Below are positions 2,293 to 58,325 of a stretch of DNA of 64,000 nt, in pieces. The stretch is from Penicillus capitatus (Eukaryota; Plantae; Chlorophyta): positions 858,786-922,785 of the forward strand of contig OZ287702.1 of NCBI GenBank assembly GCA_965649825.1. Direction: 5' to 3'. Position 1 is the first letter of the stretch. Each line of letters starts with the position of its first letter. The notes below the pieces were generated by a model that was not told where the DNA came from, made no database searches, and saw only the letters and a program-made list of their open reading frames with translations. Both the position numbers and the translations under genes were made by a program.

Positions 2293-4778
2293 GATCTCAA
2301 ACGGATCACTGTCATACCTTTAGTGCTTGCTTCTTCGAGAAGAGGCAATTTTTCCCTCCGAAAAACGAAGAACTCGACAAGAAATGAGATGCATCTAATC
2401 TGGCAGAGGAAGACGTGGTTCAGACGAACATTTGAGGTAATTCCTTCAGCCAGTTTGCCCAGTCAAAGACCACCTGTTGCAGACGAAGCATGGATGTTGG
2501 CTATCACAGTTTCGGAGAAGCATGAGTGGCTGTGTTGCAACAGAATGCTGACGAGCTGGATGACTGAGTAACCTGAACGCGGCTCCTCATTCCGAAGACT
2601 CGACAGAAGCTGCCGATGCATCCTCCGATGACAGAAGAAGACTCCAGGAGGATTAAAAGAGTGACAGCCGCCCTTCCACAGGGCAGAAGAGGACGAATTG
2701 GTGGTGTCTTCCTCGACCATGACTGGGAGAGGCGCCACTCGACAACACGAGCACTGCACTGACATGTCTCATCAGGTAGAGAATGTCACATCTGCTCTTG
2801 TGCTCAAGGATGCAGTGTCTTCAGGATGAGATGAGGAAGGCGTGTCAGAAGGAGATATAGACTCCTGGTAGATGTCTTCCAGAAGAGGCACTCACTTCCT
2901 CTTCACCTTTCTGAGAAAATCGGGAACGGACCAGCTGACAGACTCCAAAGAGAACAACACAGTAAATGCAGCAGCTGGACACCTACAGAGAGAAGAGCCA
3001 CCAGCTGCAGGAGGCGGAAAGCAGAATGACTTCTGGTGAGGCAGTCAGTGCCGACGTTCGAGAAGACCAGAAGCAGTCTTGGATCACATTTCCTTGCACT
3101 GATCCACTCCACCCACCCCGGGCAGCGGCAGCCGCATCAGGGAGGATGGTTGGGCGACAGGGAGAGCAGAGACCGTGACATTGGGCAGCCACGTGATTCG
3201 GTCGATGCCCACAGGTAAGCGTCCTTTGGATCGGCATCCAGGGCCGTCTCTTCTGTCCCTTTTCTCTCTCTTTCTCCCCTGGATGCCCGTCTGCTTCGAT
3301 CTGGGCAACGGAATCGGCCTTTGTATTTCTTCCTGTGTGCCTGTGTATTGTCTTTTGTGTGCCTGGCAGTTGTCATTGCTTTCCTTGTCTGTTTCTCTGC
3401 TCTGTGATTGTGTTTACCTTTCTTGTGCCTGTCGCCGATTCCGTTGTCCCCTATTGCATGTCTTTTTATCTTTTCTTTCTTTGTTGTTTTCTCTTGAACT
3501 GTGTTCTTTAAGTGCCATTGCGATGTTCATCATGTCCTGTTCTTTCTGTTTTCTGTGCCGTTTCCTTGCTTTCCTTGCTTTCTTGATTCACTGTGTGTGC
3601 TGGGTCCCTTTTTGGACCTCTTATTTGCATGTCCTCGCAGCGCGCCAGGTCCATAGGACGATTCCAGGGATATTCGCCAATCACACTGGGAATTCTCACC
3701 CTTCCCAGGGCTGCTTTTCGGGAGAGGTCACTGGTACCTCTGCCAGGTTGCATCGAGCGGCGCCGCTAGCCAAAGGTATGTTCTCATGTCAATCAGATGT
3801 CACATCTAACTCTGCCTTTACAGATGGGGTTAACAATACTCTCCAAGGAGAGAGTTGTAGAGAATGTTCCCCTTTGCAACATTGACTACAGAGGTAATCC
3901 AATCTAGCGATCTCTGCCTGCATTTGGCTGAATCGATGATCTTAGGAGGATGAATGGCATGCAAGAACCAGAAAAGGATCAGCCTAAACATCCGCGAGGG
4001 AGTGTCGCTAATTCAGAGCGTGGCTTGATCTCCCTCTGGTGATGGCTTTCAGATCGGCATCCAGGCCGTCTTTTCTATTTCCTTTTTCGTTTCGCTCTCT
4101 CTCTCCCTGGATGCCAGTTTTCCTCTTCTGGGCCATCGGAGCCTCTGTTTCCTTTCTGACGTGTGACCATCTCCTTGTTTGATGTATTGCTTTCTGTGCT
4201 TTTTCCTTATTTTACAGCATTCCTGCTTTGTCTGTACCCTTGTCTGTTTTAATATTGAGTTTTTATGAATGCCTTTTATTTCTTTCTGTGTCTATCTCTG
4301 TCCTTGTTTATTTTTGCTCCTGTGAGTTTTCATTTTGTGTTTTGTTTTGTCGTTTTCGGTCCCTTTTTGGACACTTAACTGCATGTCCGCGCAGCGCGCC
4401 GGATCTGAAAGCCGCTGGAGATGGTTGGGCCCACTCGCCCCATCAAAACTCTCCCACACTGCCCGAGCGGATCGATCCTATCATGCATGCCAATGGCACA
4501 ATCCTCCGTTGCAGTTCGTCGACCATGTCTCATCAAGTGAACGCTCTCTTCTCTCTCAATCGCTGTTACTAATCTCATGCCACAGGTGAAATGACTCATG
4601 CCTCCAACGAAGATGTCTGAAAGACCTTGATTCGAAGTCTGCACATGAGTGACTGTTTGAACTCTTTCCTGGCTTTCATATTCTTTTACCTCTTTTGATT
4701 TTCTTAGCAAAAAGAGAAAGGCATTCTCTACTGGTGAACAGCCAGTTGCCACTGCTGTGTTTTCCCTAGTCTGTCAGC

Positions 4779-5260: not shown

Positions 5261-6017
5261 GTGCCGACAGATACCTACTTCGCCCTCGAATTGCTCACCG
5301 AAGAATGTGCGATTCTCGAATATGCCTCGGTGATGCTGAAGACGCAGATCTATACATTGGTGCCGAACAGAACGACTGTGGAAGCGGAGCTCGATGCTCT
5401 GAGACAGTCCGGCAAGATTCGTCTGTTTCAGCTGCCGACCAACCGAAACGACGTCGCCATTCTCCTCAGCACCGAACACGACGCAGACATCACCTCCATT
5501 GCTCACAGCCGTTCACCTCGCGAATCCCAAATCCTCCTAAAGTCAGCAAGATCGCACCCCCTGTCGACGTGATCGGATCTCTCCTGTGCACAGATTCAAA
5601 GAAGCCATTCTCGACAAGACCCGCGATCCTCTTCTCTCGCAAGAGCATCTGTTCGAGGCAATGGAAGTGACGGGCGATTCGGAGCGGGAGTTGGAAGCCG
5701 TTCGTGTGTTGCATTCTCTGGGATTCATCACAGATGACGTGCGACCTGGCGGCGGCCGTTCGAACAGCATGCATATCTGGTCACCACGCCTCGGCTTCTT
5801 CGTGACGAGTCTGATCGAGGGACGCAAAGAAATGCTGAGAATGTTCCAGCGAAAGAAATATCGCGAGATCAAAGAGTCGCGACTCTTCGAATGCGAACTG
5901 CGAAAATCGAGACTCGGTATCAAATACCATCTGCGTGACCTCATGGGACTCGGACTCCTGGACGAGAAATCCACACAGGCCGGGAAATTTTACACACTTG
6001 TCACTAAGCACGATTAG
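5261..6017 (+). CDS. STK19: STK19-like winged-helix protein, copy 1 (5' end uncertain; intron ~5539-5590)
   Basis: Motifs DTYFALELL, MLKTQIYTLVPNRTTVEAELDALRQSGKIRLFQL and GIKYHLRDLMGLGLL resemble the STK19 family. No in-frame ATG immediately upstream of 5261. Confidence 0.7.
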
Positions 6018-6649
6018 CTTCGTTTGCTTTCGATGATGTCGAGTAGCTCTTTGCGAAAATGGATGATGCTCAAGGGGGTCACACATTTCAGAATCTTCAA
6101 TTGGGACGCACTCCATTGAGTGAGATCTGTGGCGAGGATCTGTGCGAATTTGAGTAGATAGAGGGCACAGTCGGAGCCGTTTGTCTGCTGCGGGACGAGG
6201 GGAGCAACAAACTTCATGGATCCCTCCGTGGACAACACGGCATGCAGCTTCTTTGCTGTATCTCTTGCCGGCTCGTTGTTTACGCCGCCATACGAATCCA
6301 GGTGCACAAACGTACATTCCTGTCGCACCCAGATGAGCAAACTCCAGTGCGTTCCGCCTTCGGCTTGGGTCACATTTGGATTATCATTCACGGCCATAAA
6401 AATGACATCACACTGCTTGAGCTTTAACGGTCGGACGAAGCAGACGTCCACGTCTTCCACAGTCCCATTCTTCAGCAAAAAGGCGGCGGCGCCCGGGAGA
6501 AAACGAAGAGATGCATTCGGCACGACTTCATGTGTGAGGTATTCAAAGTAGAAGGCCACGAGTTGATCATTGAGCCAATATGGCCCCTTCAACAGATCCA
6601 CATCTGTTTGACGAAGCAGAACGTCGTGGAAGGAAATCATCGAATGCAC
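6014..6649 (-). CDS. SENP8: NEDD8-specific protease SENP8/NEDP1/DEN1 (peptidase C48), intronless
   Basis: LLRQTDVDLLKGPYWLNDQLVAFYFEYL, GGTHWSLL (catalytic His), HLDS (Asp), QQTNGSDCALY (Cys). Confidence 0.92.
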   Translation of the reverse strand: MHSMISFHDVLLRQTDVDLLKGPYWLNDQLVAFYFEYLTHEVVPNASLRFLPGAAAFLLKNGTVEDVDVCFVRPLKLKQCDVIFMAVNDNPNVTQAEGGTHWSLLIWVRQECTFVHLDSYGGVNNEPARDTAKKLHAVLSTEGSMKFVAPLVPQQTNGSDCALYLLKFAQILATDLTQWSASQLKILKCVTPLSIIHFRKELLDIIESKRS

Positions 6650-8119: not shown

Positions 8120-8890
8120 ATGCAGCTCCTTGTTCGCACCCTTCATCGTGGCACCGTTCCCGTACAACTCAGTCCAGGCGACGGCCTCGCTGAACTGCAA
8201 TCGACGATTCATGTGAGAGACACCGTGCTTCGGCGAAGTGATGGTGTGGCGTAGAGAGTTTGTGGTATCCCTGCCTGTTGTCAGCGACTGCGTTGTGGTT
8301 TGCGAGACGTTCGTGATGACAGTGACGTAGCGGGGTTGACCCCGGGCACAATGGTGTCCCTTTTGCTGCGACTGGTTGGAGGAAAAGGAGGTTTTGGCTC
8401 GCTTTTGCGTGTCCAAGGACGCGACACCAAAGCAACGACCAATTTCGAAGCATGTCGTGATCTGAGTGGTCGACGATTGCGCCATGTCAACGCGACAAAG
8501 AAAATGGAAGAGTGGAGTCAGAAGGCCAACGATAGGGAACTGGAAAAAATCGCATTGCGACATGTGACGCAACGCGCCCGTGAACAAAGACAAGAAAAAC
8601 GCAAAGCCATCGATCCCGAAGAAGTGACTCAGCTGTTAGAAGACACCGTCCGTGGTGTCAAGAAAGCCGTCCAAGGTGCCTTAGAAACATCGCAAGCCCA
8701 ATCCAATCACCGCCGCCACTCCAAGAAACCACGCTTCATGCTTGATGATGATGAGGAGGAAGATGAGAGTGCGGAAGAGTCCGACGATGTGACTGACAAG
8801 ACAGCAGCGTCTTTGGATATCGATGGATCATCTCATATTCCTACTGATGATACGAAAGCTGTGTTGTGTGATGGGACTGTCAGTATCTAA
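8120..8890 (+). CDS. SDE2: SDE2 ubiquitin-fold replication-stress/splicing factor
   Basis: MQLLVRTL ubiquitin-like start, [15 protein letters not shown] cleavage motif, [19 protein letters not shown]; one intron after ~8207. Confidence 0.92.
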
Positions 8891-9090
8891 ACAATAATAT
8901 TAAATAGAAGGCACGAGTCACTGGGAGTGTTCATTCATCGACATCTTCCCATTATCCAACAATAAGTTTGCCCTTATCTTATGTAGTATGGCGGCGGATA
9001 AATACGGCCTCTGCACTCTCTCTATGCTGCGAAATCTTTGGAGCTCCAAAAAACAAAATAAAACATGTTGATGAATCTCACAACGCATCC

Positions 9091-12000
9091 TCATCTCAAA
9101 ACGCTCCCTAACTCATGGAGCTGAACGTCTCTTTCCATCTCTGACCTGTGCTTTTCTGTATGTTTAGGACAAATAATCAGCTTTTTGGATAAATGAACGC
9201 AGTGATCAGGACGACACCTGAGCCAAGCATTGCCTTCAGTGCGCTAAGGGGAAGGTAGTTACCTGGAATGGTAAGCCGTAGGGCATCGAATACAGGTGAC
9301 GCTATATACGTTGGCTCCTGACATACCACAAGCGTGACAATAATGCAATGGACACCGGAATTTGAGGCAGGACAGATCTCCCGTCACTCTTTCGACCGGC
9401 ATCCAGTTTCCTTGTAGGACATTCGTTTGGGGTAATTTCATGACGCATGGGATATGGTAAAAACGTCCGCAGATTCCCAGGCTGCATTTTACGACGAGTC
9501 CCAGGTGATTGGAACCTTGTTTGCATTGATAGCAACGATGGTTACCAGTGGCACAGTCTTTGCACTTTCCGTTTATGGGCTGAACGCACTTGAAATGAAA
9601 AGAACGACGACAGGGCCCCTCACAAAGCCACAAACTTTCCGACATTTCCCCTAGAAAACCAGCCACATTAAACACCGTCCCTTGTATAGGATGGACAGCG
9701 ATGCGATGAATTTACCTTTGGGTGACAGCTCCGATCTTTTGCCAGGTTTTTCGCAGACAAAACAGATATCCGAAGAGGTTAATTTGTACGTGCGTTTTGA
9801 AGGATACTTGCTCGTTGATGATCCACGTCTGACAGATGACGATGGCTTCTTCGGTCCACAGATAAAAGTGAAGTCCATCGATTCTATTTCTTTGGCCAGT
9901 TGCTGGTGCAAATCGTCCAACATACAGATGAACGCGTTTGTGTCCTGACTTGCTGATTTTGCATTCCATTCTGGCACGGAGTGCATCATCTCTTTCACCG
10001 TGAGATCGATCAAACCGAGGACAAACTTCTTCGGATCGCTGAGCATCCCGTCTGACAGCTCGCCGAAAACCGTACGCGTGACGATCTCCTTCTCCCTGTT
10101 TACGAATGGCTCATAGAAGATGCCATTCCTTCACGTGCTCACTCTTTTTGTTCTGCGGGAGCGTCGTCGTCTTTTTTGGCAGGAAGGATCGCGCCGGATG
10201 GGGCAGAATCGAGTGCTGAAGCCACGATGGTCATCTGCGGCGCGCATTCCTTATCCTCTGTCTTTGATGTGCCCTTCGAAGTGAGGGGTGCTTCGTCCAA
10301 CAAAGAAATCACACATACTGTGTCTGTCGAAGCAAGAGAGGACGTCTTTTCATCCTGCAGCACAGCGTCTGACTATTCTAAGAGTGCCTGTTCTCAGCCA
10401 TACGGATATCTTGGCAGCATCGACAGGCATTGTGGCACTGTGTTCATCTGCAACGTTGGTTTGATGTCCCAATTCTGTCTTCATCCCAGAAGAAAGCTCC
10501 AGCTCCTCTTTGCATAGAGATTGGATCCACGATGGTCCAAGATTCTTGAGATTGTCCCAAACGGTCTGAACAAAATGATCCTCCTTTCTCCCCATGACCG
10601 TCTCCAAAATCTACAGACAGTAAAAGATGTCAGCCGCCAGCTGAGCAATGCCTTGTCCCTAAGGAAGGACCTGATTTGCTGCCACCATGAGAGATTCGTG
10701 CGTCAAGAGCGGTTTGTCTTCTTCTAGACATCGATCTCTTTTGGCTCTATGACTGCCGCCTCCAGGCGTTTCTGGCACATCCTTTCTCTTTCTCTTTGTT
10801 GACGAGACATTCCTTTCTATCTTTTTCAGAAGATTCTCCATCACAGATTTCACTTGACCAGCTTCTTGTTGCTGGAGTTTCTTCTCTTTTTGCATTTGCT
10901 TCTCGAATCCTTCCACTGTTTTGATCAACATGTCCATCACCTAACGTGCCATACGTACAGGAGGATGCGCAGAGGACTGGCCAACCTGTCGAGCAACTCT
11001 CCCTTCGATCTTACGAAGCTTCTTTTCGGTCATCTCTTCTTGATTCAAATTCTTCGTCACGCCCTTCACGAGAGCTTCAAGCACATTTCTCACATCCGCA
11101 TACACCTGCGCTTCCATTTTCATGAACTGTCTTGAGGCATCGCTGGATCCTCTGACATGACATCTCTTAAGTATGCGCCCGTCAAACGAAGGGTGTTTGA
11201 TCCACTTGATCTTTGAACGGTTACGGTATGAATGCCTGGAGACTGTGTTGTCTGCATCGTCAAAATGAAAGTCGTCCAACCACGAGATCGTTTCATCGAG
11301 ATGGTATCTCTTGGCATCCGACAAGGCCTCTGCATTGATTTTGCGCATGATGAGTCCAGCACTTTTCCCAGTCATGTCACAGGGACGCACACAATGTTTA
11401 ATGGCATTTGCCGCATAGCTCTTGTCGTGCATGATGGTGATGCAGCCTCGCGGCATCGGCACATAGAAAGCGCCATTAGTAAAGCCATAGAGCTGCGTTC
11501 CAAACGACAATCTCGAATCGGAGAAGATCCTGAAGCAATGGGCCTCAGAAAATAGACAGATTCCGATAGGAAGTATATGCCTCATAGAGTAGATGGGTTG
11601 ACAGAATCTCTGTGCATCGTCAAAGTGACTTTGGATGCCTTCCGATCCGTCATGGTACATATTGAGTGCCCACGAATTAATAAACCCTTGTGGAACAATA
11701 CCACAATCGACTAACGGATTTTCGACCAGTTCCTACAAGACCTCCTCGAAACCAGACACAACTGAGCCGACGGCAAACAACCTTCATCCAAACGGGATGC
11801 GACGGTACATCGACCCGTACACCGTGTGCCACACTTGCATCTCTTTCGGCCAATTGCTCTTTCGTCCACAAGTAACGCGCCCCGAAGAAGTACTTGGTAC
11901 GTTTCAGGGCTCCATTCTTTCCAATCGTAGGGTGGTAACATTCTGGTGGATACATTCCTTTCTGCGAATTCTCATGCACGTCATCGGCTCGGGCTTCGAT

Positions 12001-15000
12001 TTGACTGAGTTCAGAGTGACTGAAAAGTGCAGAGTACGTCGTCACCCCCACGGGAACGGCACCATCTGGTGGTTCAGATGGAAATCCAGGAACGGTTTTC
12101 CATTCTTTACCGTTCGAGACATTCCTTCGACACATCGCAGAGGCATAAACATCCAGCTGCTGCGTCGAACATTTTCCACCGCCCTCATTTCTCTGCGCGT
12201 CAACACACACTCAGCCGATGCCCAACAGGACACGACTGACATACGAATGTTCCATAGTCTTGTGGTATATAGTCTGGTGGAAAAAAGAAGTCCGTTCTAA
12301 TGAATTCTCTGTCGCCCATGCACATCTGTCAACCAGATTCTCAACGAAAGATGATCGCGACGATGATCCTTACTTTGATTTTGACTTCAATAAGATCGTA
12401 TTTGAAACAGTCACGTGTATTGATTAGATAAAAAGGCCAGGGGACATCGAGTAGATGTGACTTCTGGATGCCGGATATGGCAGCCGATGCTTTCACTGTG
12501 CTGGCTGAGAAGCAATCCGAATCTGCCGGCAGCGGTGGAGCGTCCTCCAGCACCGTACACAACGTATCGCTCTCCATGGCTCCTTCTCCTTCTCCTTCTA
12601 GGGCATCTCTCTTGCAGGTGATCTCAGTAAATGACGAGGTGCCTTGGGAAAGAGAATCATCTTTGGAAGAGCTGCCGCTATCTCTATCGTGTGGCACTGC
12701 CGGCATCGTCTTCTTCCTTCGACTGAATACTCTGTTCTCCAAATCTTCTTTCTTGTCATCCACGACAGCAATGACCTCGTGACAGTAATCGATCAACCTG
12801 GTTGTATTCCATTGCCGAATGTGACCATGAAGCCATTCTTCGACTCCTAACACCACAGAATTCAACGATGTCTGCTGCAGTCTGCACAGACATGTCATTC
12901 CTAAATCCATCAAGGCTATGGCTATGTCTGCACGTACTTATCAAGAGACTTCCACAGATTCTCTTCAACAAACATCTCCAATCTGCAGCTAAGGGTGTGG
13001 ATTTTGATGTTTGCAGGCGTTGCATTGCTGTTGCACGTAGACACTCTTCTTTTCAGTGTTCGCTGCATAAAAGCAGTCGTCGCCTTGTTTGGTCTTTCAA
13101 ACGCTTTTCCATCTCTGATGTTAAAACAAGAAGAATTTAATTTTTCTCCCACTCCTGTGGCTAAGGTAGATTTCTGTAGATGAGATGCGGCAACATCTCC
13201 TTTCCCTGCTGCCGCATCGATGATCTGCGTCGCCGTGTTCTGGACCGAAGCGAACCAGTCAGAGAGAGAACCGGTTGAGATGACTGGTGTCTCCTCTTGT
13301 CCTCCAGGACCATGCCCCGTCATAACAGAAACAGATCGAACAATATGGGATCCACTTCGCACTGCATGGCTGCGTGATGGAGACGATGCGGACATGGTCT
13401 TCTGCAGCGATCTCTTTGTAACTAATGACGATGTATCCTTCTCGACCATACTGTCAAAATCCGTCAATGATTTCTGTCCAGCGATCAGCGGCAGAACGTG
13501 GGCATCTTCGAGAGAACGGGCGGCATTGCGCAGTGCCCAGGTTCCTCCGATGCCTTTGCGCACCACGATGACCACTTGGACATTGCTCTCGGCAAGGCCA
13601 CATCTGCAACAGCAGGGATCGAGTGTCAACGACATTGGTATGCCATGAACAAGAGCACAGACAGTTTTCCTCTCTTCATTTCTGCACAGGCCTTCAGCGT
13701 TCCGGTGTCTTTGTCCAGCCGATAATGACAACAAAGAAAGACATGATCTCCAATCCACTCATCTACGCTCTTCAAACCTACGGCATGGATTCAGAAGAGC
13801 ATACGGTTTGGATGCTGGAAGAAGACCGTTGATGACTTGGCATAGAGCACCAAGGGTGAATTTCGCGATCGTCTGGCGTTCAGCTTGGTTGAGAAGGTAG
13901 CTCTTGATCAAGAAATCATCTCGATCTGGCATGCGCACCAGCAACACCTCATCCGAAATGATGGTCTGAACCATTTGAGCGATCTGTGGAGATTGTATCC
14001 TCTTTGAACTTGGAGGCTGGATCACAATCGGCGGCAGAGCCGTGTACGTATCCGTCACATGCAACTGATGACTTTCGCTTTGTTTCACAAACGAAACGCC
14101 ACTGGTAAAGGACTCCAATTGCACGTGTGCTGCGCTTGAATCTGTCAGAAATGTCTCAAGAGAGGAAACCACATCGAGCAATGTTCCGTGAAGAAGAGTC
14201 AAACGAGCAAGCTCCCAGAAAAGTCTCTGGTGCATGACAGGTTCTTGAGAGATGCATCGATCCAAACGCGCGACCCATAGTCCCATCTCTTGATAGAAAC
14301 GATCCCAATCATTTTTCTCCTTCTGAAAGAAGACACTTGTCAGGAGCGATCGAGCCAAGAGTGAGAGAGGACTAGAGTTGGGTTCTGTGCCCTTGTCCTC
14401 GCAGGCGTCTTGCGTTTCATCACACGCTGCGGGTGCGGATCGGGCGATCGATTCTGCACAATAGATGTGAGTTCTGGGTGCACATGCATCAGTAATTGGA
14501 TGTAAGCATCCAGTGCCTTGTCCTGTCCCTCGCCCAGTTTCTCTCTGAGCCGATCCTTAAAGCTTTCCAACCATAATGTGATCTCCTGTATCACTGTCCA
14601 TGTGTCGGCATTGCTGGAGGAAAGAGATGGTGTAATGGGAGCAAGTTTCGCGAATATGAGGTCCGGATTGGCCACGTCTGACAACACGTTTGCTGTTCGT
14701 TCGGGATCAAGTATGTAGCTACAGGGTAGCTTCCTTTTTGCTAAGAGCTCATCGAGCAGAACGTTCATGAGAGAGCCCGATTGAGACCGCGTTCGACGGG
14801 GCGAAGCTGTTCTCTTTGTCGTCGGGATAACTTCCGCGACGTCGCTTCCTTCTGCCTTCCTTACGGCGCGTCTCTGACCAGCGTCGTAAATTATCGCGCG
14901 CAAACTGCGTAGTCGATGCGGTTCTGTCTTGTCAAGGTCGTCCGTCGTGGTATCGTGCTTCTGGACGCCGCCCGCTGTCCTCGACGCTGCTACAAGGTTC

Positions 15001-15266
15001 TTCAGCATTCCGGTCGTCTGGTCATTCATACCTAAACAGAAATGCAGCAGGTCGAAAATATTGTCGACGTGGGTCGAGGTGGCGTTGACAACGCCGACGT
15101 TCTCGGTAGGTGCACCGTCGCGTGTTTGGCCATGCCGCCGAGCGATCTCCGCATTGTGCCTTAGCGCTCGCCATATTGGCGCTGGAGTGAGAGTAACCGT
15201 GGGCGACGGCGCGACAGCAGATTCCTGTTCGTTCGCAAGATCTTGAAGTCGCATTGGACGACGCAT
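9091..15266 (-). CDS. Large multi-exon protein: possible BAH-like region, ALKBH5-type 2OG-Fe(II) dioxygenase and C-terminal NSD-type PHD fingers
   Basis: ALKBH5 motifs RTKYFFG, SHFDD (HxD) and YAANAIKHCVRPCD..GLIMRK at ~11330-11900. PHD array CFVCEK..LCEGPCRRSFHFKC..CYQC..KCSLGICGRFYHIPC..CPLHYCHAC..CIRCPTAYH..ICPKH at ~9130-9790. In-frame GT-AG junctions were traced by eye from ~12900 to 9091; linkage of 12900-15266 is less certain. Confidence 0.75.
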
Positions 15267-23690: not shown

Positions 23691-26602
23691 ATGCTGAAAC
23701 CTTCGCGTTTGTATAAGCCAAAGCCGACAACTGACCCGACCTATGACCTCCTTCGCTCTGAGACGGCACCACTCGGTGCCTTCTTCCGCCCGCAGTGTAT
23801 TGCCGTCATCGGTGCGACGGATCGGCCCGGAAGTGTCGGCAAAACGGTCTTATGGAATCTGATACGTCATCCATTCGGCGGAACTGTCTTTCCGATCAAT
23901 CCAAAACGAAAGAGCGTCCTGGGCGTCAGAGCCTATCCGACCGTCAAGGAGACACCGGACCAAGTTGAACTCGCCCTGATTGTGACTCCTGCCGTCACGG
24001 TGCCGAAACTCGTGAAAGAATGCGTCGATGCCGATATACGTGGCGTCATTATTCTCTCTGCCGGGTTCAAAGAGATTGGCGAATCGGGAATTCAGCTGGA
24101 GAAGGAGATTCTGGAGGCGATTCGAAAGAGTGAGACACGTGTGATTGGGCCCAATTGCTTAGGACTCATGAATCCTTTGACGGGACTGAATGCAACATTT
24201 GCTAGCTCCTTGGCCAAACCAGGCAATGTCGGATTCATCAGTCAAAGCGGCGCATTGTGCACAGCTGTATTGGATTGGAGTCTGGAAGAGAATGTCGGCT
24301 TCAGTGCCTTTGTCTCGATCGGTTCCATGCTTGACGTGAACTGGGGAGATTTGATTTATTACTTAGGAGATGACCCACGCACGCACAGCATTGTCATTTA
24401 TATGGAATCGGTGGGGAATGCACGGAGATTTCTCTCTGCGGCACGAGAGGTGGCCATGACCAAGCCGATTATTGTGATCAAGGCTGGGAGAACAACAGAA
24501 GCGGCAAAGGCAGCGGCATCGCATACAGGATCACTTGCCGGCAGCGATGCTGTACTGGATGCTGCTTTCACTCGCTGTGGCGTCATGCGTGTCAACACCA
24601 TTGCTCAGCTATTCAACTTGGCGGAAGTCCTTTCAAAACAGGTGACGCATGGATGACGTGACCTTTGGGATTGGACCGTAGAGAATCGGATGGCTATGTT
24701 TTTAGGGACAGAAGCTACCAGCAGGTCCACGACTGACAATCATCACCAATGCAGGGGGTCCAGGGGTGTTGGCCACTGATGCATTGATGTTGACTGGAGG
24801 AGAATTGGCCACTCTGTCCGATGAGACACAAACGGCCTTAGATGCTATCTTGCCATCCCAATGGAGTCACGGCAATCCCATCGATATCCTGGGAGACGCC
24901 GAACCCGAACGCTATGCCAAGACACTCGAAGTGTGTGCTCAGGACGCGAACAGTGATGGACTGCTGGTGGTATTGACCCCTCAAGCCATGACCGATGCGA
25001 CGAGTACCGCAGAGAAACTGAAGAATGTGACGGAGAGCGTGAAGAAACCTGTTTTGGCAAGTTGGATGGGAGGCCCAGATGTGATGCCAGGCGTCTCCGT
25101 TTTGAACAAAGCAGGCATTCCAACCTACTCCTTCCCCGATGCCGCCTGCGAAGTGTATAATCTGATGTGGAAATACAAGCACAATCTTCAATCCCTCTAC
25201 GAAACGCCGACCCTGTCCAGGAAAGGAAAGCTCACGGATTACATGAACGGGACAGATTCCAGTCAAGGCGAATCTGTTCAGGGAATGATCGACAAAGCCC
25301 TTCGAGAAGGCAGGACGATCTTGACAGAACTGGAATCGAAGAAGCTCCTCTCGGAATACGACATTCCAACTGTCCAATCACTCTTCGCAACCTGTGCAGA
25401 AGAAGCAGTGGCTCAAGCTGAGGCTATGGGATATCCCGTTGTCGTCAAGGTTGTTTCCAAGACGATCACACATAAAACAGATGTCGGCGGTGTTAAGCTC
25501 AATGTGCATTCATCCGAAGATGTGCGCCAGACTTTTGAAGAGATGCAAAAGTCGATCACCGAAAAGGTCCATCCTTTCAAATTTATTGCGTGTCGTGAGG
25601 ATGGGTATTCTGTAGTTTGGCGAGGAGCACTTTGAGGGTGTCTCGATACAGCCGATGGTGTCACTCAGTGATGGATACGAACTCATTATCGGCAGCAGTG
25701 TGGATCCTCAGTTCGGTCCTGTCTTGGTGTTCGGTTCCGGTGGATCGCTGGTCGAAGTTTTCCAGGATCGCAGCATCATGCTGCCTCCGCTGACCACAAC
25801 GTTGGCCAGAAGAATGATGGAGACGACAAAAATCTACAAGGCATTGAAAGGCGTCCGTGGCCGTTCCTCGGCTGATCTGACCGAGCTGGAACACCTCCTT
25901 GTGCGTTTCAGTGAACTGATTGTCGAGAATCCACGCATTAAGGAGTTCGATATCAATCCATTGCTAGTCTTTGAGGCGTCACACAGATTCCCTCTGCTGG
26001 CGCTGGACGCCCGTGCTGTTCTCTTTCCGGCTGATGTGCCCGACAAGGACCTGCCGAAGACGGCCATTCGTCCCTATCCTTCACAGTACATCTCCCACTG
26101 GACGTTATCGGATGGAGAGCACATCGTTATCCGTCCTATCCGTCCAGAAGACGAGAAGAAAATTGCAGAATTCCATCGAACCTTATCGGAGGAGAGCGTC
26201 TACTTCAGATACTTCCATTCCGTCAAGCTGGACACCCGTGTGGCCCACGAACGGCTGACAAGGATCTGTTTTATCGATTACGATCGTGAAATCGCTTTGG
26301 TCATTGAGCACGAAGGAAAGGAGGGTACAGAGATCATTGGTGCCTCTCGCCTCAGCAAGTCACATGAAGGCATCAATCAAGCAGAGTTTGCTATGCTGAT
26401 CACGGACGGCTATCAGCGCAAGGGACTCGGAACGGAGACGCTGAAAAGATTGGTTGATGTTGGCCGCCATGAGAAAATTGAAACGATCGTTGCGCAGATT
26501 CTGCCGGAGAATATGGCAATGCAGCGTGTCTGCGAGAAGGTCGGTTTCGAGATCGAGTTCGATCACGAAAGCGACTATGTCCGAGCTCGACTTCAATTGT
26601 AG
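23691..26602 (+). CDS. Bacterial-type ADP-forming acyl-CoA synthetase (alpha+beta) fused to a C-terminal GNAT acetyltransferase; two introns
   Basis: [89 protein letters not shown]; [21 protein letters not shown]. Introns begin at 24642 and 25567. Confidence 0.93.
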
Positions 26603-41386: not shown

Positions 41387-42709
41387 TCAAAGCGATTGCA
41401 GATAGGTGTCGAAGTCCCGGGACAGTCGATGATGCAGGTGATAGGCGTCCATCATTTCTCGAAAACGTCTTCCGCCGTCCTGCGGGATTCTTATCCGCGC
41501 ATCGTCCATAGGAAACATTCTAATGACCATCGTTTCACGAATGCGTCAGCAACGGCGATCGTTGTTTACCTGAGAGGAGGCAGTTTCAGATCGGCAGCGA
41601 GGGTTACCAGATCTCGACTGAGCAGCGCATTGTCCTTCGATTCTGCGGCAGACAGCGCATCACGTATAGTTTTCACCTCGACCTATCTGTCAAAGGATGC
41701 GTAAGAAAGCGAAGCTGTGGATGATGCCGTGCCTCGGAGATGTGATCAAATATGTTCTCTATTCGGCCGTATTTCGAAACAAGCTGCATTGCGCGTTTGG
41801 GGCCGATGTTGTGCACCCCTGGGATATTGTCTGCGTTGTCTCCCTGAAGTGCGAGCACTTCGATCCAAAGACTTGGATCCAGTCCATACTCTGCCGCAAA
41901 CGTTTCGTCGGTGTAATAGTCGAAGTGGCCGTTCGTCATCGGCCCACGGATCATGACCACGTTCTCTCGCAGAAGCTGAAAGAAATCCTACCGAAAACAT
42001 CTGGCGGCCGACAAATGACTGATGGATGCTCACTTTGTCTCTGGAGAGGATATAGATCCGGGTGGTGTCGCTGGCAAAACGGTTCGAGAGAGTGGCAATA
42101 ACATCGTCTGCCTCGATGCCGTGGACACACATCCATTGTATCTCCAGCAGATTCAGTGCCTTCTGGATGATCGGAACCGACTCGACGATTTCTCTCGGTG
42201 TCTCCTCTCTGTGCCCCTTGTATCCAGCATACATCATTTTGCGAAAATCCGCGCCTCCAGCGTCGAAGGTCACGATACAGTGCGTCGGCGGCGGACGTGT
42301 GCTTAGCAAAGCAAAGAGATATCGCATGAATCCGAACAGGACGGTCACATCGACACCCGACTGTGAGATCTGCCTCTCTTTGTAGGCGTAATGAACGCGG
42401 CTAACAGGGTCCATAGCATCGATCAGAAACACCCTGTCAAGCAGGACATTGTTTCGAGGAAAGAAACGTCGCGTCACACCTGTTGGTGCAGGATTTGATG
42501 AATGTGATATCTTTATCCAATGCTGCTTGAAGTCGATCTGTCAGGGACGTGTAGGTACCAGAAGCGTATCCCCGCGTCGACGCCATGTACCGGCGGCTGG
42601 ATGCAACTGATCGCCGAGATCCTTGTAGGGTCGTGTCTATTCCAGCGACTTTGCGAGAAGACGAAAAGATGACTCCAAGACTGCTACGGCATTTGGCATG
42701 CCAGTTCAT
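41387..42709 (-). CDS. Organellar 5'-3' exonuclease (Pol I N-terminal/T5 flap-nuclease fold)
   Basis: VFLIDA, VTFDAGGADFRKMMYAGYKGHR, GIEADDVIATL, SRDKDF, LQGDNADNIPGVHNIGPKRA (H3TH), LLSRDLVTL; Arg/Ser-rich leader. Confidence 0.88.
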
Positions 42710-48913: not shown

Positions 48914-51900
48914 TCAGATGCCAACGTTTCCTTTCTGTTTGGGATCGATCGATGAATGCCGCGGCTCGTTTTGCGATTCGGACATGATTCTGTTGTAGAT
49001 CGATCTTCGACCGCAAGACTTGGATGGCTCACGTCGATGTTGCCTAGACCATTGCGTAAAGGCATTTTTAAAAGCGCTGTGAGAAACGAAAGGCGCACTC
49101 AGGGGCAACGGACGCTTTGTTCGAGATGTTTGGCGATGTGCCGAGACGCTTGAGTGTTGGATTCAGCAAGGACTCGCCGTATCCTGCCGCGACATAGCCC
49201 TCCACCATCTTCAGAAACTCTCTCCCCAGTTCCGGCATTTCGTCGAGAATGGTATCGAGATCGGCGCGGGAAAGGGAATAGAGTTCACAGTAATCTTCAG
49301 CAACGACTGTCGCTGTTCGGTACTCCCCTGAACCACGGTGCACAGAGATCATCATCACATACTGAGAGAGAAAGACGTCTTACCCAGCAAACAGCTGTAC
49401 TCGCCAAAGTACTCGCCTTTCTTCAGCTTGCCGATCTTCTTGTAGCTGTCCGATGTGCCAAAGAGACTGACACAACGCCACGCGTTTTCCAGATCCATTG
49501 TGTTCGGATGGCCCTGATCCGTGTTGGTCGGATGCATTCCGCCGCCAATTTCGCTCGCTTTCATGGACTGAACCTTTTTTTCTGCGTAGACGGCGGGTTC
49601 CGCCTCGGTGCTGCTTTCGTAGTAGATCCGCACTTCGAGATGGCCATGTGCCACAAAGTACATCACATCTCCTGGATCACCCTGTCGAATGACCACCTCT
49701 CCCTACAGAACGATGCTTCGACGAGCAACACGGAGCGAGGCGTACAGGTCCATAGTATTCCAATCTGAGCAACGGCACAATGCGCACAATGAACTGCGGA
49801 TCTTTGCCTTTAAAGAAGGGCACGCCGCCCAAGATATCTCGATAGAGATAAAGAATCAATTCCGTTCGCAAAGGCAACGAGAGCTCTGTATGCAATGGAG
49901 CCTCGAATCGGCGGCGGCGGTATGGAACGAACCATTGATGATGGAGGTTTCGTCGACGACGATCTGCCGAGAGAGAATATGATGAAAGAATATTCGAACA
50001 CGATCGGCAAGATGCGTCGGGACTTTGCGCTTCTTTAAGAAATCTTCCATGGCCTGCACGGAATGCATCCCTGACAGAAAACGCCTTGATTCTGTCAACC
50101 ATAGTTCTTTTGGTGATACGCGTGTTGGCATTGTTGAGTGAGGACATCATGGATGACATAGAGCCCATGAAATAGGCAAAGACGGTGACACCAATAACCA
50201 TTCCTGAACCGAGGAAAGCTTCGAAGAAAGGGATCATGTGTGAGAGGGTGTGACCGATCATGGACATGATCTTCTCGTTCGAATTGCCAGGAATAACGTC
50301 TCCGTATCCCACCGTTGTCAGCGTCGACATCGACCAGTACAGCGCCGTGACGTACTTGTCGAAATTCGGCGCCAGTTGCAAGCCGCTGATACCGACCCAC
50401 GTATCCTGCAGGTCAACGTCGTTCAAGAGCAGCAAATGAAGATGTGAGGACGGGGAGTGACTTACTGGATCAAATCCTTCGAGATAGGAAGAGTAGTAGA
50501 AGAAACAGGCGCAGAGATGCGTCACTAGGATCGCCGCCGACATGAAGGTCACCAGTCTTAGAACGCCTTTGTTGAACATCGTCTCCAGATGTCTCAACTG
50601 CGTAGGGATTTTGACAATTCGCAGCATCTTTACGATCTTGAACAGCCGCACGATCTTCACAATCTTGACGACTCGCGTCGCCTATGCATAGATACACGAT
50701 CCCTCATCTCCATCATCACTGCGTCTGATTGCCTTGAAGAGTTTAAAGAATCCGAGTGACTTGTTGGTGACGATCTCGTCAAAGGGAATGATGGAGATCA
50801 CGTCGATGATCAGCCATGACTTGGCATAGTTCCGAGCGATCTCCTGTCGATCGATCACGGGACGATTGTTATCGTCTACGAACAGACATAGCGTCACGAT
50901 CCAAGCATGAGCAAACCATGCTCTATCCGTCCTTACCCACATAGGCCGTGCGAAAATTGAGTAAGATATCGAGACCAAAGGAAAGATTGATGAGCAGCTC
51001 GAATACCCCCAACGTCGACGTGGCTGAGAATTCGATACCGAAGCAAATAATGTACGGAGAGACGATGCAGATGTAAGCAAAGAGCAGCAGCATATAGAGA
51101 TCCCAGCGCGTGCGAAAAGTACTCGATGGATAGATGATGTCCCACAGGATCACCTGCTCACAACGAAAGAACCTCTCAGTGCGTTTGAGCAGAGACGACG
51201 GAAGACGCACGCGGCATGGGCGACAGAAAGGAGCCCAGACAGATTCTTCCGTCGATCTTTCCGATTCCGTCTCGCTGCAGGACGACGAATCTGTGGACCC
51301 ACTGCACACAGACAGGTCTCGTCGATCGCGACGTCTTTGCAGCTGGACGTACTGTCGAGCCTTTATCGATCCACTCGAACGTCTCGATGGCATGTCCATT
51401 CTGGACTGCACCACGACGGATGACAGACCCGACTCGTCATCGCTCTCCTCTGAAACGACGCGCGTTGATTTAGAGGTCACGATGTCGAGAGGCGGCGCGA
51501 TATACGGTCGAGGATGGGTTTGGCCATGATGCTGGGCGGCGGTACAAGGCGATCTTCGATTCCTTCGGCTATCGGTCTCGGAGTCGTCGTCGTCGTGCGA
51601 TTCTTGCGATGATGTTTTGCCCGAGGTGGTTCCGATTCGTGTTTCCACGACTCGATCGCCGGATCTTCCTCAGGCAACAATGAACACAGACAGAATGCCT
51701 TCCACCACTGCGTCGATCCGTTTTCCTCATCGACCTGCGTGTCCTCCGTCTCCAACGGCTGCGTCACTTTAAAGTCGTAGCAGGTGAGTTTGATCAGATC
51801 CGAAGCCGCCGCGTCTTTGTTGCGCGTTTCGTTTTCTGCCGACTTAAAAGTATACCGCGTCTTTTCCATATCGCCATATCGCTGCTTCAGTTTTGTATAC

Positions 51901-52274: not shown

Positions 52275-54457
52275 GCCTCGCAATGACGATCTGCGCAACG
52301 CATCGAAGGTATGCGCTCCTGTCGTCTGTTTTGCGTTTCGCACAGACGTCGCTGCGATCATTGGCGAGTGACGCTTCGAAGGAAGCTTCGACAAAACTGC
52401 GGGAAACGAAAGAGCATCTCCGCGACGCATGTTTTGCCCCGGATCACATTCGCAATTTCTCCATCATCGCTCACGTGGACCACGGAAAATCGACACTGGC
52501 GGATCGACTGATGGAGATGACGGGTGCGATACGACTGAGACAAAAGGAGCAGTACCTCGATAAACTTCAGGTCGAACGGGAGAGGGGCATCACCGTCAAG
52601 GTCTGTGCATCCCTTGGTATCCATCTCAAGTGATGCCCATGGGTTTTCAGGCTCAGAGTGTATCTTTGGTCTACCAATACCAAGGCACAGACTATCTACT
52701 GAACTTGATCGATACGCCTGGGCATGTGGACTTCAGCTACGAAGTCAGTCGATCCATAGCGGCCTGTCAAGGAGCCATTTTGCTCGTGGATGCGACTCAA
52801 GGCATTCAAGCCCAGACGGTCGCGAATTTTCATTTGGCCTTTGATCAAGGACTGGATATCGTTCCCGTGATCAATAAGATCGATATGGAGGCAGCGAACC
52901 CCAAAGAAGTAGCCAATCAACTGCACGATGCTTTTGCCATTATGCGAGATGAAGTGCTTCTGATTTCGGCCAAGACGGGTCAGGGTGTCCAACGGGTCCT
53001 GGACAAGGTCGTTGAGTGAGACATCTCTCATCGAGGAAGCATTAGGGATCATGCTGACAGGGGAATTGCTCCTCCGAGTGGAGACATTCATGGAAAGCTG
53101 CGCATTCTGCTGTTCGATGCCTATCATGATGAGTACAGAGGTGTCATCTGTTTAGTCGAGGTCATCGACGGCACCCTTCAGAAGGGCATGCGTGTGACAT
53201 CTATCGCATCGGGCGAATCGCACGATGTCTTAGAAGTAGAAACTGTTGAAGGTAGGTGATGGTGAGAGCTTTTGGGCATAGGTTGGTATGTTGTCTCCTG
53301 AGCCCATACCCAGAGAACAGCTGTTAACAGGACAGGTGGGATATGTCATCGCTTCCGGTATGAAATCGACACGGTCTGCTCAAATCGGAGATACGCTTCA
53401 TCTCCACGACACACCGGTAGATCCGCTTCCTGGCTTCGCTGCGACGAAGTGCAACGTCTTCTCCGGTGTCTACCCAACGGACTCAGACGACTTTGAACTG
53501 CTGCAATCTGTTTGTCTTTCCTTTGTCTCTGCGGCAAAGGATCTCTTTGCGTGCAGGCGGTGGACCGTCTGAAGCTGAATGATGCAAGTGTGACGATGCG
53601 AAAAGAAAGCAGTGTGGCATTGGGATACGGTTTTCGATGTGGATTCCTGGGAATGCTGCATCTCGATGTGTTCTGTGATCGACTGTCACAGGAATACGGC
53701 GTCGATGTGATCGTCACAACTCCTACCGTTCCGTATAGAATCACACTGCCGAATGGAGAAGAACGGACGTTGCAGAATCCCTGCGATTTTCCATTAAATC
53801 AGAAAGTGAAGCGCGTGCAAGAGCCAACCGTCCGCGTCACCATCGTGGCCCCCGAGGAATACACAGGCGACGTTATGGAACTCTGTACGTCGAGGAGAGG
53901 GACAATGCATGATCACACACATCTGAGCGGAAACCGTGTCCTCTTTCGTTACACCATGGGATTCGCTGAACTGGCCGAAGATTTCTTCAGCGATCTAAAA
54001 TCGCTGACCAAAGGATACGCCAGTCTCGACTACCAGGAGGCCGAGTACAGAGATGCCGATCTGCAACGACTGGACATCATGGTGAATGGAAAACCGGTCG
54101 AGGCCTTTGCGCGAATCATCCACAAGTACCTCGCGATGCTGATCTGTCGAGAAGCTATTTTGATGTGACAGGGATCGAGTGGCCAGAGTTGGAAGACGCC
54201 TCTGTCAGAAACTGAAGAGCCTATTGGACAGGCAACAATTCGAAATTGCGATTCAAGCCTCGTCAAATGGCCGCATCATCTGCCGGGAGACGCTTTCGGC
54301 CCTGAGAAAGAATGTCTTGGCCAAATGCTACGGCGGAGATATCACCCGAAAGAAAAAGCTCCTCGAAAAGCAGAAAGAAGGCAAAAAGCGCATGAAATCG
54401 ATCGGCGTCGTACATCTGCCTCAAGGCGCGTTCCATGAAATCATAAAGCTGCGGTAA
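52262..54457 (+). CDS. GUF1: Translation factor GUF1/LepA (EF4), mitochondrial type
   Basis: [94 protein letters not shown]. Confidence 0.96.
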
Positions 54458-54604: not shown

Positions 54605-55421
54605 ATGGAGTCTCTCGCGAAGTGCAGCGTCCAAGGTTCCCGTCCAGAATTCTGCCTCCAGCCCAGAACAGTGCATTCGAAAGAGGCACGACTGCGCATG
54701 AAAGATGTGCGTTCGTTCTTTGTGCGTCTCTCTACCCAAGAGAGCAAACAAAGCGCATCGGGTGCGAAATCCCTCGCGCCGCCTTTGCGTCTGAAACAGA
54801 CAGCGACCAAGGCGCCATCGTCTGAATTGTCCATTTCGACGCAGCTTCGAAACCAGCGCATGACTGAGCGACGTCTGCAGTTGGGCCGCTCTGTCGATGC
54901 ACTTCGCGAGTATTTTCCCCACTTGTTGGTCACACCATGGCCACAGGAATTGCTTTCGGACGAGGTCGTCCTCAAAGAAACGATCTCACCGCACTTCAGT
55001 CTGAAGCCATTCAACGCATACGGAAAACGAAACTACAACAGACACATGTGGTTTGTGCGCCTCTACGCCTCGCTCTTTTGCAGAGAGACCAAAGTAAGAC
55101 GCATCATCATTGTGATTGGAACTGGTCCCTATCTGATGTGCTGTGTTGGGCGGCTGTCAGGTGCAGGTAATGCGGTTTTGGCAGCCGAGCAGAGAGATCG
55201 TCATCATTCGATGGAGCATGAAATTTCGCCCACGCGTCTTTCACAGCATCTACGGCACGACTTTGCAGATGGATGGCGTTTCGGAGATCAAACTGGATCG
55301 CCAAGGACGTATCTATCAGCATCAGGTGGATGTGACCGACCGACACAAAGTCAAGTTTGATTTGGAGTTCCAGCGTTTCGCTCAGAACGTCCTCTGCGAA
55401 GCAACAGTTGCCGTGGGATGA
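54605..55421 (+). CDS. DUF2358/SnoaL-like (NTF2-fold) protein, full copy; one intron
   Basis: LREYFPHLL..GKRNY..VRLYASLF|VQVMRFWQP..IRWSMKFRPR..MDGVSEIKLDRQGRIYQHQVD fits the DUF2358 pattern. Confidence 0.68.
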
Positions 55422-56210: not shown

Positions 56211-56846
56211 GTGCATTCGATGATTTCCTTCCACGACGTTCTGCTTCGTCAAACAGATGTGGATCTGTTAAAGGGGCCATATTGGCTCAATGATCAACTC
56301 GTGGCCTTCTACTTTGAATACCTCACACATGAAGTCGTGCCGAATGCATCTCTTCGTTTTCTCCCGGGCGCCGCCGCCTTTCTGCTGAAGAATGGGACCG
56401 TGGAAGACGTGGACGTCTGCTTCGTCCGACCGTTAAAGCTCAAGCAGTGTGATGTCATTTTTATGGCCGTGAATGATAATCCAAATGTGACCCAAGCCGA
56501 AGGCGGAACGCACTGGAGTTTGCTCATCTGGGTGCGACAGGAATGTACGTTTGTGCACCTGGATTCGTATGGCGGCGTAAACAACGAGCCGGCAAGAGAT
56601 ACAGCAAAGAAGCTGCATGCCGTGTTGTCCACGGAGGGATCCATGAAGTTTGTTGCTCCCCTCGTCCCGCAGCAGACAAACGGCTCCGACTGTGCCCTCT
56701 ATCTACTCAAATTCGCACAGATCCTCGCCACAGATCTCACTCAGTGGAGTGCGTCCCGATTGAAGATTCTGAAATGTGTGACCCCCTTGAGCATCATCCA
56801 TTTTCGCAGAGAGCTACTCGACATCATCGAAAGCAAACGAAGCTAA
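56211..56846 (+). CDS. SENP8: SENP8/NEDP1 protease, second intact copy
   Basis: 211-aa ORF identical to copy 1 except SQLK>SRLK and FRKE>FRRE. Confidence 0.9.
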   Translation: MHSMISFHDVLLRQTDVDLLKGPYWLNDQLVAFYFEYLTHEVVPNASLRFLPGAAAFLLKNGTVEDVDVCFVRPLKLKQCDVIFMAVNDNPNVTQAEGGTHWSLLIWVRQECTFVHLDSYGGVNNEPARDTAKKLHAVLSTEGSMKFVAPLVPQQTNGSDCALYLLKFAQILATDLTQWSASRLKILKCVTPLSIIHFRRELLDIIESKRS

Positions 56847-57678: not shown

Positions 57679-58325
57679 GCACCTTCGTTCGGCGTTTCGA
57701 TCGAGATCAGGTCGAGAGCATCTGCGCGAGGAAGAAGATCGACACGAGTGCGGATATCGACCTTCGATGACTTATCGGTCTCGTGTTGTTGTGCTGCGCG
57801 ATTAGGTATACATTATATAGGAGACGAGTCAACGACGGCGCAGTATCTTCTCGTCTTTGACGCCATCAATTTTTGCTTCTGGCCCGGTGCGCATTCGGCC
57901 CGTCCGATCGAAGGGTGTCTGTCGAGAAACATCTCTCTTTACAGATTCGGAATTGGAGTACTGCCACCTGTCAACGGGATTACAGGTGAAAACGCCATAG
58001 GGATGCATTCTGTGCACACGGTCTCTCTCATCAGAAAACGCTCTCGGCCGATTCCGATGGCTTCAACGCAGAGACACTGAAGAGAGTGAAAGGTCATCTC
58101 TATCGAACAGAGGACACACTATAGGCTTTGCTGTTTCAGGATTAGATGTGCGAAGATGGTTGAATTGGCCTCGTGCTTTGCCTCTGGAGGACGAAAGAGC
58201 CAGGCTCCTGCGCGAAGTCTCCTGATCAGTGTCACGCATGTACAGACAGCCAACGGATTTCTTTTCAGGTGGGGCAAGGGTTGGACGCCTTTGAAGGACG
58301 TACCGAAAAACTCATCTGCGCCGCC
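57679..58325 (+). pseudogene. QNG1 internal fragment (exon 2 to the start of the last exon), more diverged
   Basis: DESTTAQYLLVFDAINFCFWP and related exons. Many substitutions relative to 59240-59894; ends at the gcgccgcc junction. Confidence 0.85.

Follow-up and report, generated by a model that had tools for sequence, protein, structure and literature searches.

A predicted gene of the green alga Penicillus capitatus joins a DMT3-type ALKBH5 dioxygenase core to an NSD-type PHD cassette

The stretch of DNA analysed here, called the window throughout, comprises 64,000 nucleotides (nt) of the green alga Penicillus capitatus (GenBank assembly GCA_965649825.1, contig OZ287702.1, positions 858,786 to 922,785), and its reverse strand carries, at 9091..15029, a predicted gene for a 1,737-amino-acid (aa) protein that combines an AlkB/ALKBH5-type Fe(II)/2-oxoglutarate (2OG) dioxygenase core with three C-terminal PHD fingers of the kind found in NSD histone methyltransferases. 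The coding region, on the (-) strand, opens with the ATG at 15029, closes with the TGA at 9093-9091 and is divided into 15 exons by 14 introns measuring 45-65 nt; its spliced translation contains 0 internal stops, and the segments homologous to relatives P0001-P0007 in tblastn searches stop at exon borders; GC content is near 50%. As far as the sequence goes, the AlkB and PHD parts constitute one gene, which we assign to the long 'unicellular ALKBH5' subfamily, as a chlorophyte member of the group whose prototype is Tetrahymena DMT3/TtALKBH5. A preliminary description of the locus had already joined an ALKBH5-like domain to NSD-type PHD fingers in a single gene, and that junction stands, the spliced open reading frame (ORF) being continuous and relatives having uninterrupted ORFs. 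The extent it gave, 9091-12400, was too short: the gene reaches the ATG at 15029, 2.6 kb beyond, takes in four more introns on the way and is almost twice as long as had been delimited. Five of the six splice junctions proposed there fall within 5 nt of those in our model (10941-10985, 10611-10670, 10355-10403, 10096-10142 and 9651-9715), but the sixth, placed at about 11711-11756, is really 11733-11781, and four introns inside the interval (12326-12373, 12193-12244, 11530-11580 and 9218-9262) had been overlooked.

All exons lie on the (-) strand, exons 1-5 at 15029-14373, 14322-13827, 13777-13663, 13603-12938 and 12881-12374, exons 6-10 at 12325-12245, 12192-11782, 11732-11581, 11529-10986 and 10940-10671, and exons 11-15 at 10610-10404, 10354-10143, 10095-9716, 9650-9263 and 9217-9094. 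The introns between them have GT-AG ends in 13 of 14 cases: intron 1 (14323..14372, 50 nt), intron 2 (13778..13826, 49 nt), intron 3 (13604..13662, 59 nt), intron 4 (12882..12937, 56 nt), intron 5 (12326..12373, 48 nt), intron 6 (12193..12244, 52 nt), intron 7 (11733..11781, 49 nt), intron 9 (10941..10985, 45 nt), intron 10 (10611..10670, 60 nt), intron 11 (10355..10403, 49 nt), intron 12 (10096..10142, 47 nt), intron 13 (9651..9715, 65 nt) and intron 14 (9218..9262, 45 nt). The sole departure, between introns 7 and 9 at 11530..11580 (51 nt), has GC-AG ends and is itself in frame and free of stops. We take it as an intron because homologues have no insert there, reading PIYS[ML]R[LI]FSDS across the site; retained as coding sequence it would add 17 aa to the double-stranded β-helix, a version that we ruled out with 0 homologues showing the insert. 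Two other arrangements were rejected: a single 181-nt intron at 12193-12373, within which homologues reveal an 81-nt exon (REFIRTDFFF...), and a 27-nt intron at 13778-13804, which breaks the frame, the true donor lying at 13826. Of the whole predicted gene model, we are least sure of the start codon. Other in-frame ATGs occur at 15254 and 15266, with an in-frame stop upstream at 15326-15324, and conserved coding segments reach ~14,920 in tblastn searches with the nearest relatives; we prefer the ATG at 15029 because it matches the N-terminal length of P0002 and of the Caulerpa protein P0003.

Support for a single gene comes from its relatives. Proteins P0001-P0003 are collinear with our first, 1,075-aa model at 45-48% identity over 95-98% of its length, and each has both the AlkB and the PHD part, an agreement well outside what chance would produce. 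P0001 is encoded on a 3,672-nt JGI contig (L001) on which a single ORF spans model aa 520-1696 with none of the introns of the window gene, and P0002 on an uninterrupted 4,839-nt ORF of a Logan contig; from their sequences both contigs look like spliced transcripts of relatives. We conclude that one gene is present because relatives encode the same fusion on uninterrupted ORFs. Our first search recovered the fusion in at least 11 predicted proteins, from several green-algal classes as well as environmental sources, and an exhaustive search added P0084; the named sources are Caulerpa lentillifera, Chlorella vulgaris, Apatococcus, Myrmecia, Coccomyxa and Botryococcus. Among named organisms the ulvophyte Caulerpa lentillifera comes closest, at ~45% identity, and since all close relatives are chlorophyte, the gene is of green-algal origin; a diatom or another stramenopile, which the GC content and the very small introns might have suggested, was rejected on that ground. 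We note that on L001 the frame is broken by ~10 nt at 3548-3562, exactly at the site of the window gene's last intron (after ...AYHSR), and that the frame following the break still encodes CRPNDCVILSKKLIICPKH; this break could reflect splicing that was alternative or left incomplete, or else a fault in the assembly.

The catalytic core occupies aa 883-1104 (11304..12069, (-) strand, split by introns 11733-11781 and 11530-11580) and is the only AlkB core that hidden Markov model (HMM) searches find in the protein. Searched with phmmer against the PDB, it returns ALKBH5 chains only (E=1e-27). An AlphaFold2 model of residues 618-1110, in which the core has a predicted local distance difference test score (pLDDT) of about 90, gives a Foldseek top 20 composed entirely of ALKBH5 structures (TM-score 0.80-0.83, root-mean-square deviation about 2.1 Å, E about 1e-18), followed by NMAD-1, ALKBH6, ALKBH2 and AlkB at E 1e-9 or weaker. 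The HxD of the Fe(II) triad (11619..11627) is formed by H1014 (11627-11625) and D1016 (11621-11619), aligned to human H204 and D206, and the distal histidine H1074 (= H266) is followed directly by C1075 (= C267) at 11391..11396. In the 2OG-binding segment (11343..11363) R1091 corresponds to human R283, but the first 2OG arginine, R277, is replaced by S1085, preceded by K1084. Thus H1014, D1016, H1074 and R1091 bear out the earlier statement that the HxD, the distal histidine and the 2OG arginine are kept, which does not extend to the first arginine.

An alignment of 69 cores places these residues in the context of the clade. The Fe(II) triad and the equivalents of N193, Y195, K132 and R283 are invariant, so named by their positions in human ALKBH5; in the 2OG motif NxY...Rx5R, N193, Y195 and R283 are accordingly kept while R277 is a serine with a lysine before it, a departure that DMT3 makes likewise. 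At the R277-equivalent position 62 of the 69 cores have Ser and 2 have Asn, and position 276 is always Lys or Arg. The equivalent of C230, which in animal ALKBH5 is a partner in the flip3 disulfide, is T1040 (11496..11498), the C227 equivalent is Ser, and C267 is kept. With the C230 and C227 cysteines lost, there is no flip3 disulfide. Across the protist clade the C230-equivalent residue is Thr in 37, Ser in 23 and Gly in 5, the ciliates having Ser. Pfam 2OG-FeII_Oxy_2 does not match this protein, and neither the isolated AlkB core nor the N-terminal 1,118 aa has any Pfam match.

Three further conserved modules lie upstream of the core. The first, which we call Ndom, is an α/β domain of ~200 aa at aa 256-470 (13462..14214, (-) strand, split by introns 13778-13826 and 13604-13662), found by iterated HMM searches in 61 of 70 relatives, ciliates and Balamuthia included. 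It corresponds to no Pfam family, and its AlphaFold2 model (pLDDT 77, core >90) has no PDB neighbour by Foldseek, the best match having E=0.9. Its weak Foldseek matches to FIH (E about 1) do not count as evidence of a second dioxygenase domain. The Ndom profile retrieves only 317 of 1.84 billion representative proteins at E<=0.001, in which it stands nearly always upstream of an AlkB core, and proteins with enough downstream sequence keep the order Ndom, pre-A, pre-B, AlkB. The second module, pre-A (aa 621-700, 'HTLSCRLEMFVEE..LW', 12716..13011, (-) strand, containing intron 12882-12937), is a predicted long helix detected by HMM in 64 of 70 relatives and modelled as helices at construct residues 20-86 with pLDDT of about 65-79. 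The third, pre-B (aa 790-840, 'PWPFYLINTRDCF..REFIRTDFFF', 12248..12448, (-) strand), contains intron 12326-12373 and ends at intron 12193-12244; it is a β-hairpin directly before the AlkB core with the motif PWPFYLIxTRDxF, is likewise detected by HMM in 64 of 70 relatives, and is modelled as strands at construct residues 192-200 and 203-212 with pLDDT of about 90, construct R184 and D185 being invariant. All three modules are common to chlorophytes, ciliates and Balamuthia. That Ndom helps to engage DNA or the nucleosome is a guess on our part.

Downstream of the core, a charged, helical middle region (10671..11123, (-) strand, containing intron 10941-10985) is conserved with P0001-P0003 and includes a stretch resembling a nuclear localization signal, KKIERNVSSTKRKRK (aa 1249-1263), in which a motif scan marks KRKRK; the same scan finds no AT-hook in the 1,737-aa protein. 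The three fingers follow across aa 1551-1715 with all Zn ligands present: PHD finger 1 (aa 1551-1599, C4HC3, 9553..9764, split by intron 9651-9715), PHD finger 2 (aa 1606-1669, Pfam PHD_NSD, 9343..9534) and variant PHD finger 3 (aa 1671-1715, Pfam PHDvar_NSD, 9160..9339, split by intron 9218-9262), all on the (-) strand. The Pfam scores lie well above the cut-offs, at 49.8 bits and E=4e-13 for PHD_NSD (cut-off 23.9) and 59.6 bits and E=3e-16 for PHDvar_NSD (cut-off 27), and the cassette is collinear with NSD2 674-820 (E=1e-10) and with the equivalent NSD3 region (8e-12). On this collinearity we identify the fingers as the PHD1-PHD2-variant PHD3 cluster that NSD proteins carry upstream of SET. 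The preliminary description was right to call the fingers NSD-type, but it had counted three to four where there are three, and its designation of them as PHD/C5HCH-type does not hold, since the C-terminal NSD fingers (the PHD5-C5HCH module) gave insignificant sub-alignments only. Of the two HMM checks it had put forward, PHD_NSD exceeds its cut-off but 2OG-FeII_Oxy_2 gives no match. Pfam detects no SET, AWS or PWWP domain across the 1,737 aa, so that the finger cassette is the only part in common with NSD methyltransferases. An insertion of ~14 aa, NWMPVxxVxGDxSC, separates fingers 2 and 3 in the window protein, P0001, P0002 and the Caulerpa proteins and has no counterpart in NSD2, NSD3 or the proteins of trebouxiophytes.

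The affinity of the core is with ciliate proteins of the DMT3 type rather than with animal ALKBH5. It is 50-51% identical (about 240 bits) to proteins of Paramecium, Tetrahymena malaccensis and Ichthyophthirius, but shares no more than 35% identity (about 110 bits) with ALKBH5 of human or zebrafish, so that the resemblance to the animal enzyme claimed earlier was imprecise; the C230-C267 disulfide and R277 of the animal enzyme are also missing. No plant sequence was among the proteins that the word-indexed search retrieved, nor any plant structure among the PDB matches. Where animal ALKBH5 stands alone as an enzyme of some 390 aa, the window protein has 1,737 aa and extra modules; its relatives are 600-2,400 aa long. 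In a neighbour-joining tree computed without support values, the window protein falls with P0001 and the Caulerpa pair within a chlorophyte clade, the ciliates form a separate clade and the animals sit on a long branch. The R277 equivalent is Asn in the Tetrahymena malaccensis and Ichthyophthirius proteins, matching published DMT3.

Precomputed Pfam annotation shows that other lineages pair the DMT3-type core with ARID (P0006, P0048, P0050), SAM (P0054, P0060), zf-CW (P0065) or CXXC plus PHD (P0066), and the swapping of such domains among relatives is the pattern expected for a chromatin enzyme. The single AlkB core is split by insertions in P0067 and P0069. In P0013, a Coccomyxa model, the core is accompanied by starch synthase domains, probably through a merged gene prediction.

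By sequence affinity and by analogy with DMT3, we propose, with a probability of roughly 0.6, that the core removes the N6-methyl group from adenine in double-stranded DNA of the nucleus and that the PHD cassette confines the enzyme to a histone context, probably near transcription start sites (TSSs). The core would oxidize the N6-methyl group of adenine to a hydroxymethyl intermediate that decays to adenine and formaldehyde, and its preferred substrate would be N6-methyladenine (6mA) in double-stranded nuclear DNA over N6-methyladenosine (m6A) in single-stranded RNA. Three features lead us to infer this preference: the grouping of the protein with DMT3, the absence of the C230-C267 disulfide by which animal ALKBH5 is limited to single strands, and a loss of R277 that DMT3 shares. 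The cassette, for its part, may dock the enzyme on a particular state of the histone H3 tail, and docking would confine erasure to defined chromatin, most plausibly the surroundings of TSSs. In both green algae and ciliates, DNA 6mA genuinely marks promoter-proximal sequence, the green-algal pattern being arranged around TSSs. A chromatin-tethered adenine demethylase had been put forward in the preliminary description for nascent-RNA m6A or DNA 6mA; by the analogy with DMT3, DNA 6mA is the better supported function and nascent-RNA m6A the less favoured one.

The functional precedent is Tetrahymena thermophila DMT3/TtALKBH5, described by Niu et al. (PNAS 2026, PMC12974511) as an in vivo DNA 6mA demethylase with TSS enrichment. 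Knockout, rescue and over-expression of DMT3 alter DNA 6mA at TSSs, and its catalytic inactivation mimics the knockout (PMC12974511). The same study reports that unicellular ALKBH5 homologues are unusually long, that the first 2OG arginine of DMT3 is replaced, that its C230 equivalent is Ser with C267 kept, that C230S is linked to activity on double-stranded 6mA DNA, that reversion of the serine to cysteine (S1775C) impairs activity, and that ALKBH5 and AMT1 co-occur in Chlamydomonas (PMC12974511); the orthologue reported there for Chlamydomonas reinhardtii is without PHD fingers.

Several points weigh against a DNA 6mA eraser here. The activity of DMT3 has not been reconstituted in vitro, and Arabidopsis ALKBH9B, a known demethylase of m6A in single-stranded RNA, also has Ser at C230 (PMC12974511); since ALKBH9B with its serine is an RNA demethylase, the C230 substitution offers a hint but no diagnosis. 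Without R277 the enzyme could bind 2OG less well, for which K1084 could compensate. Our literature searches turned up no experiments on any green-algal member, nor on the PHD cassette in such a setting.

A more specific version of the proposal, which we put forward tentatively and regard as doubtful as a whole, is that core chlorophytes have a DMT3-type eraser steered by histone marks, with PHD1-3 reading an H3 state, for example at promoters, and Ndom engaging linker DNA or the nucleosome. Were it true, a histone mark would for the first time be directly coupled to DNA 6mA erasure, the TSS-centred pattern of green-algal 6mA would be explained, and Ndom would be a new nucleic-acid- or nucleosome-binding fold.

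The alternative that survives best, unlikely in our judgement and yet to be taken seriously, is a chromatin-tethered RNA m6A eraser, in which the PHD cassette would place an ALKBH5-like enzyme on active chromatin and nascent transcripts would be demethylated co-transcriptionally. All solved ALKBH5 structures and assays concern m6A in single-stranded RNA, and the fold match is to those structures; the equivalent of K132, a residue specific to ALKBH5, is kept, plant ALKBH9B combines Ser at C230 with RNA activity, and m6A occurs in Chlamydomonas mRNA (PMC10787120). What turns us from this alternative is that DMT3, the nearest functionally studied relative, alters DNA 6mA while RNA m6A is unchanged in its flip3 mutants (PMC12974511), that the core is much nearer to ciliate proteins than to the animal RNA demethylases, and that relatives are fused to the DNA-binding domains ARID and CXXC.

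Much less probable is a chromatin-recruited enzyme that repairs alkylation damage of the 1-methyladenine/3-methylcytosine type in DNA or RNA and is no epigenetic eraser. AlkB-family ancestry would suit such a role, and ALKBH2 and AlkB bound to double-stranded DNA are among the weaker structural neighbours (E about 1e-7); the ALKBH5 matches, however, surpass those to NMAD-1, ALKBH6, ALKBH2 or AlkB by ~9 orders of magnitude or more. Enzymes of the ALKBH5 clade are not known to repair 1-methyladenine or 3-methylcytosine, and the phenotype of DMT3 concerns 6mA. Equally improbable, in our view, is a catalytically weakened scaffold in which loss of the first 2OG arginine has turned the enzyme into a reader or adaptor: the Ser at R277 and the missing Pfam 2OG-FeII_Oxy_2 match point that way, but the loss is clade-wide (62 Ser and 2 Asn of 69) and includes DMT3, whose catalytic inactivation copies the knockout, and all other ligands are invariant, with Lys or Arg always at 276. 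Least credible of all is a gene-model artefact in which neighbouring AlkB and PHD genes are joined by chance open frames, for although the gene model is predicted from genomic sequence and the region ~10500-9950 is poorly conserved, the reading frame remains open through 14 short, canonically bounded introns, and the fusion recurs in two relatives whose ORFs are uninterrupted, in at least 11 predicted proteins spread over several green-algal classes, and in P0084.

Elsewhere in the window, a convergent gene on the (+) strand at ~8500-8900, read by eye, ends ~200 nt beyond the stop of the demethylase gene and has an acidic C-terminus. A 221-aa ATG-initiated ORF at 11635-12300 (+) lies antisense to the AlkB exons and is most probably an open frame that occurs by chance opposite coding sequence. 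Three successive ORFs at 23691-26599 (+) match CoA_binding_2 with Succ_CoA_lig, ATP-grasp_5, and ATP-grasp_5 with GNAT; by their domain content they look like a single intron-split gene for a fusion of an ADP-forming acyl-CoA synthetase with an acetyltransferase, of Pat-like architecture. A 5'-3' exonuclease N-domain is found at 41749-42477 (-), an ion-transport channel at 49680-50660 (-) and an EF-G C-terminal domain at 53512-54165 (+). Ulp1/Peptidase_C48 ORFs with near-identical Pfam scores (53.3 and 53.1 bits) lie at 6017-6649 (-) and 56211-56843 (+) and could each be a copy of a dispersed repeat or of a protease carried by a transposon. Near the second of them, ORFs at 54605-55357 (+) and 58156-58899 (+) match Pfam MMU163 (PF17119) at the same profile positions, which suggests a locally duplicated unit beside the Ulp1 ORF. 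Among the long ORFs scanned within the 64-kb window there is no methyltransferase of the MT-A70/AMT1 type.

To our knowledge, the eraser of this promoter-proximal 6mA did not become known until 2026, and then from ciliates alone. The locus supplies a clean full-length model for a predicted green-algal orthologue of that eraser, and the comparison built on it indicates that a core of four conserved modules (Ndom, pre-A, pre-B and AlkB) extends through the family from ciliates to chlorophytes and Amoebozoa, and that in several green-algal lineages a recognisable NSD-type histone-reader cassette has been added to it. Ndom itself emerges as a small family of conserved domains, which among 1.84 billion proteins numbers 317 representatives. 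Targeting of algal 6mA erasure by histone marks becomes a directly testable question.

No new category is opened, because both the fusion and its predicted function are already in the literature, and the undescribed system that the preliminary description had seen here is to that extent described. Iyer, Zhang and Aravind (BioEssays 2015/2016, PMC4738411) describe fusions of AlkBH5-clade proteins with PHD fingers and AT-hooks from lineages that have DNA 6mA and predict DNA demethylation for these fusions, and DMT3 has since provided genetic evidence of DNA 6mA removal (PMC12974511). The window protein shares with the fusions of Iyer and colleagues the architecture class, the functional prediction and the occurrence in 6mA lineages; it differs in having no AT-hook, and the text consulted neither specifies the fingers as NSD PHD1-3-type nor describes the N-terminal modules (PMC4738411).

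Among enzymes further removed, C. elegans NMAD-1, of the ALKBH4 clade, is likewise an AlkB-family protein proposed as a DNA 6mA eraser, but it belongs to another clade and is a far weaker structural match (E about 1e-9, TM about 0.55). Human and zebrafish ALKBH5 (PDB 4NRO, 7WL0, 4NPL) have the same fold, the HxD...H triad and the equivalents of N193, Y195, K132 and R283, whereas identity is 35% and their R277, C227, C230 and flip3 disulfide are lost in the window protein. The cluster of NSD2 and NSD3 (PDB 7CRO, 7CRP, 29HG; PF22908, PF23004) offers the same three collinear fingers with every Zn ligand, upstream of SET in those proteins and C-terminal here, with a finger 2-3 linker about 14 aa longer here.

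The closest comparison is with DMT3 and the unicellular ALKBH5 group, with which the window protein has in common its great length, the lost first 2OG arginine, a C230 position that is not Cys, a retained C267, the upstream modules Ndom, pre-A and pre-B, and 50-51% core identity to ciliate orthologues. The C230 equivalent is Ser in DMT3 and Thr here, the R277 equivalent Asn there and Ser here, and the ciliate proteins in our set are without the PHD cassette. Most unicellular ALKBH5 members are reported to have two AlkB-like domains (PMC12974511), in contrast to the one of the window protein, whose Ndom shows no AlkB-like structural match. The gene at 9091..15029 is thus a new member of a known family.

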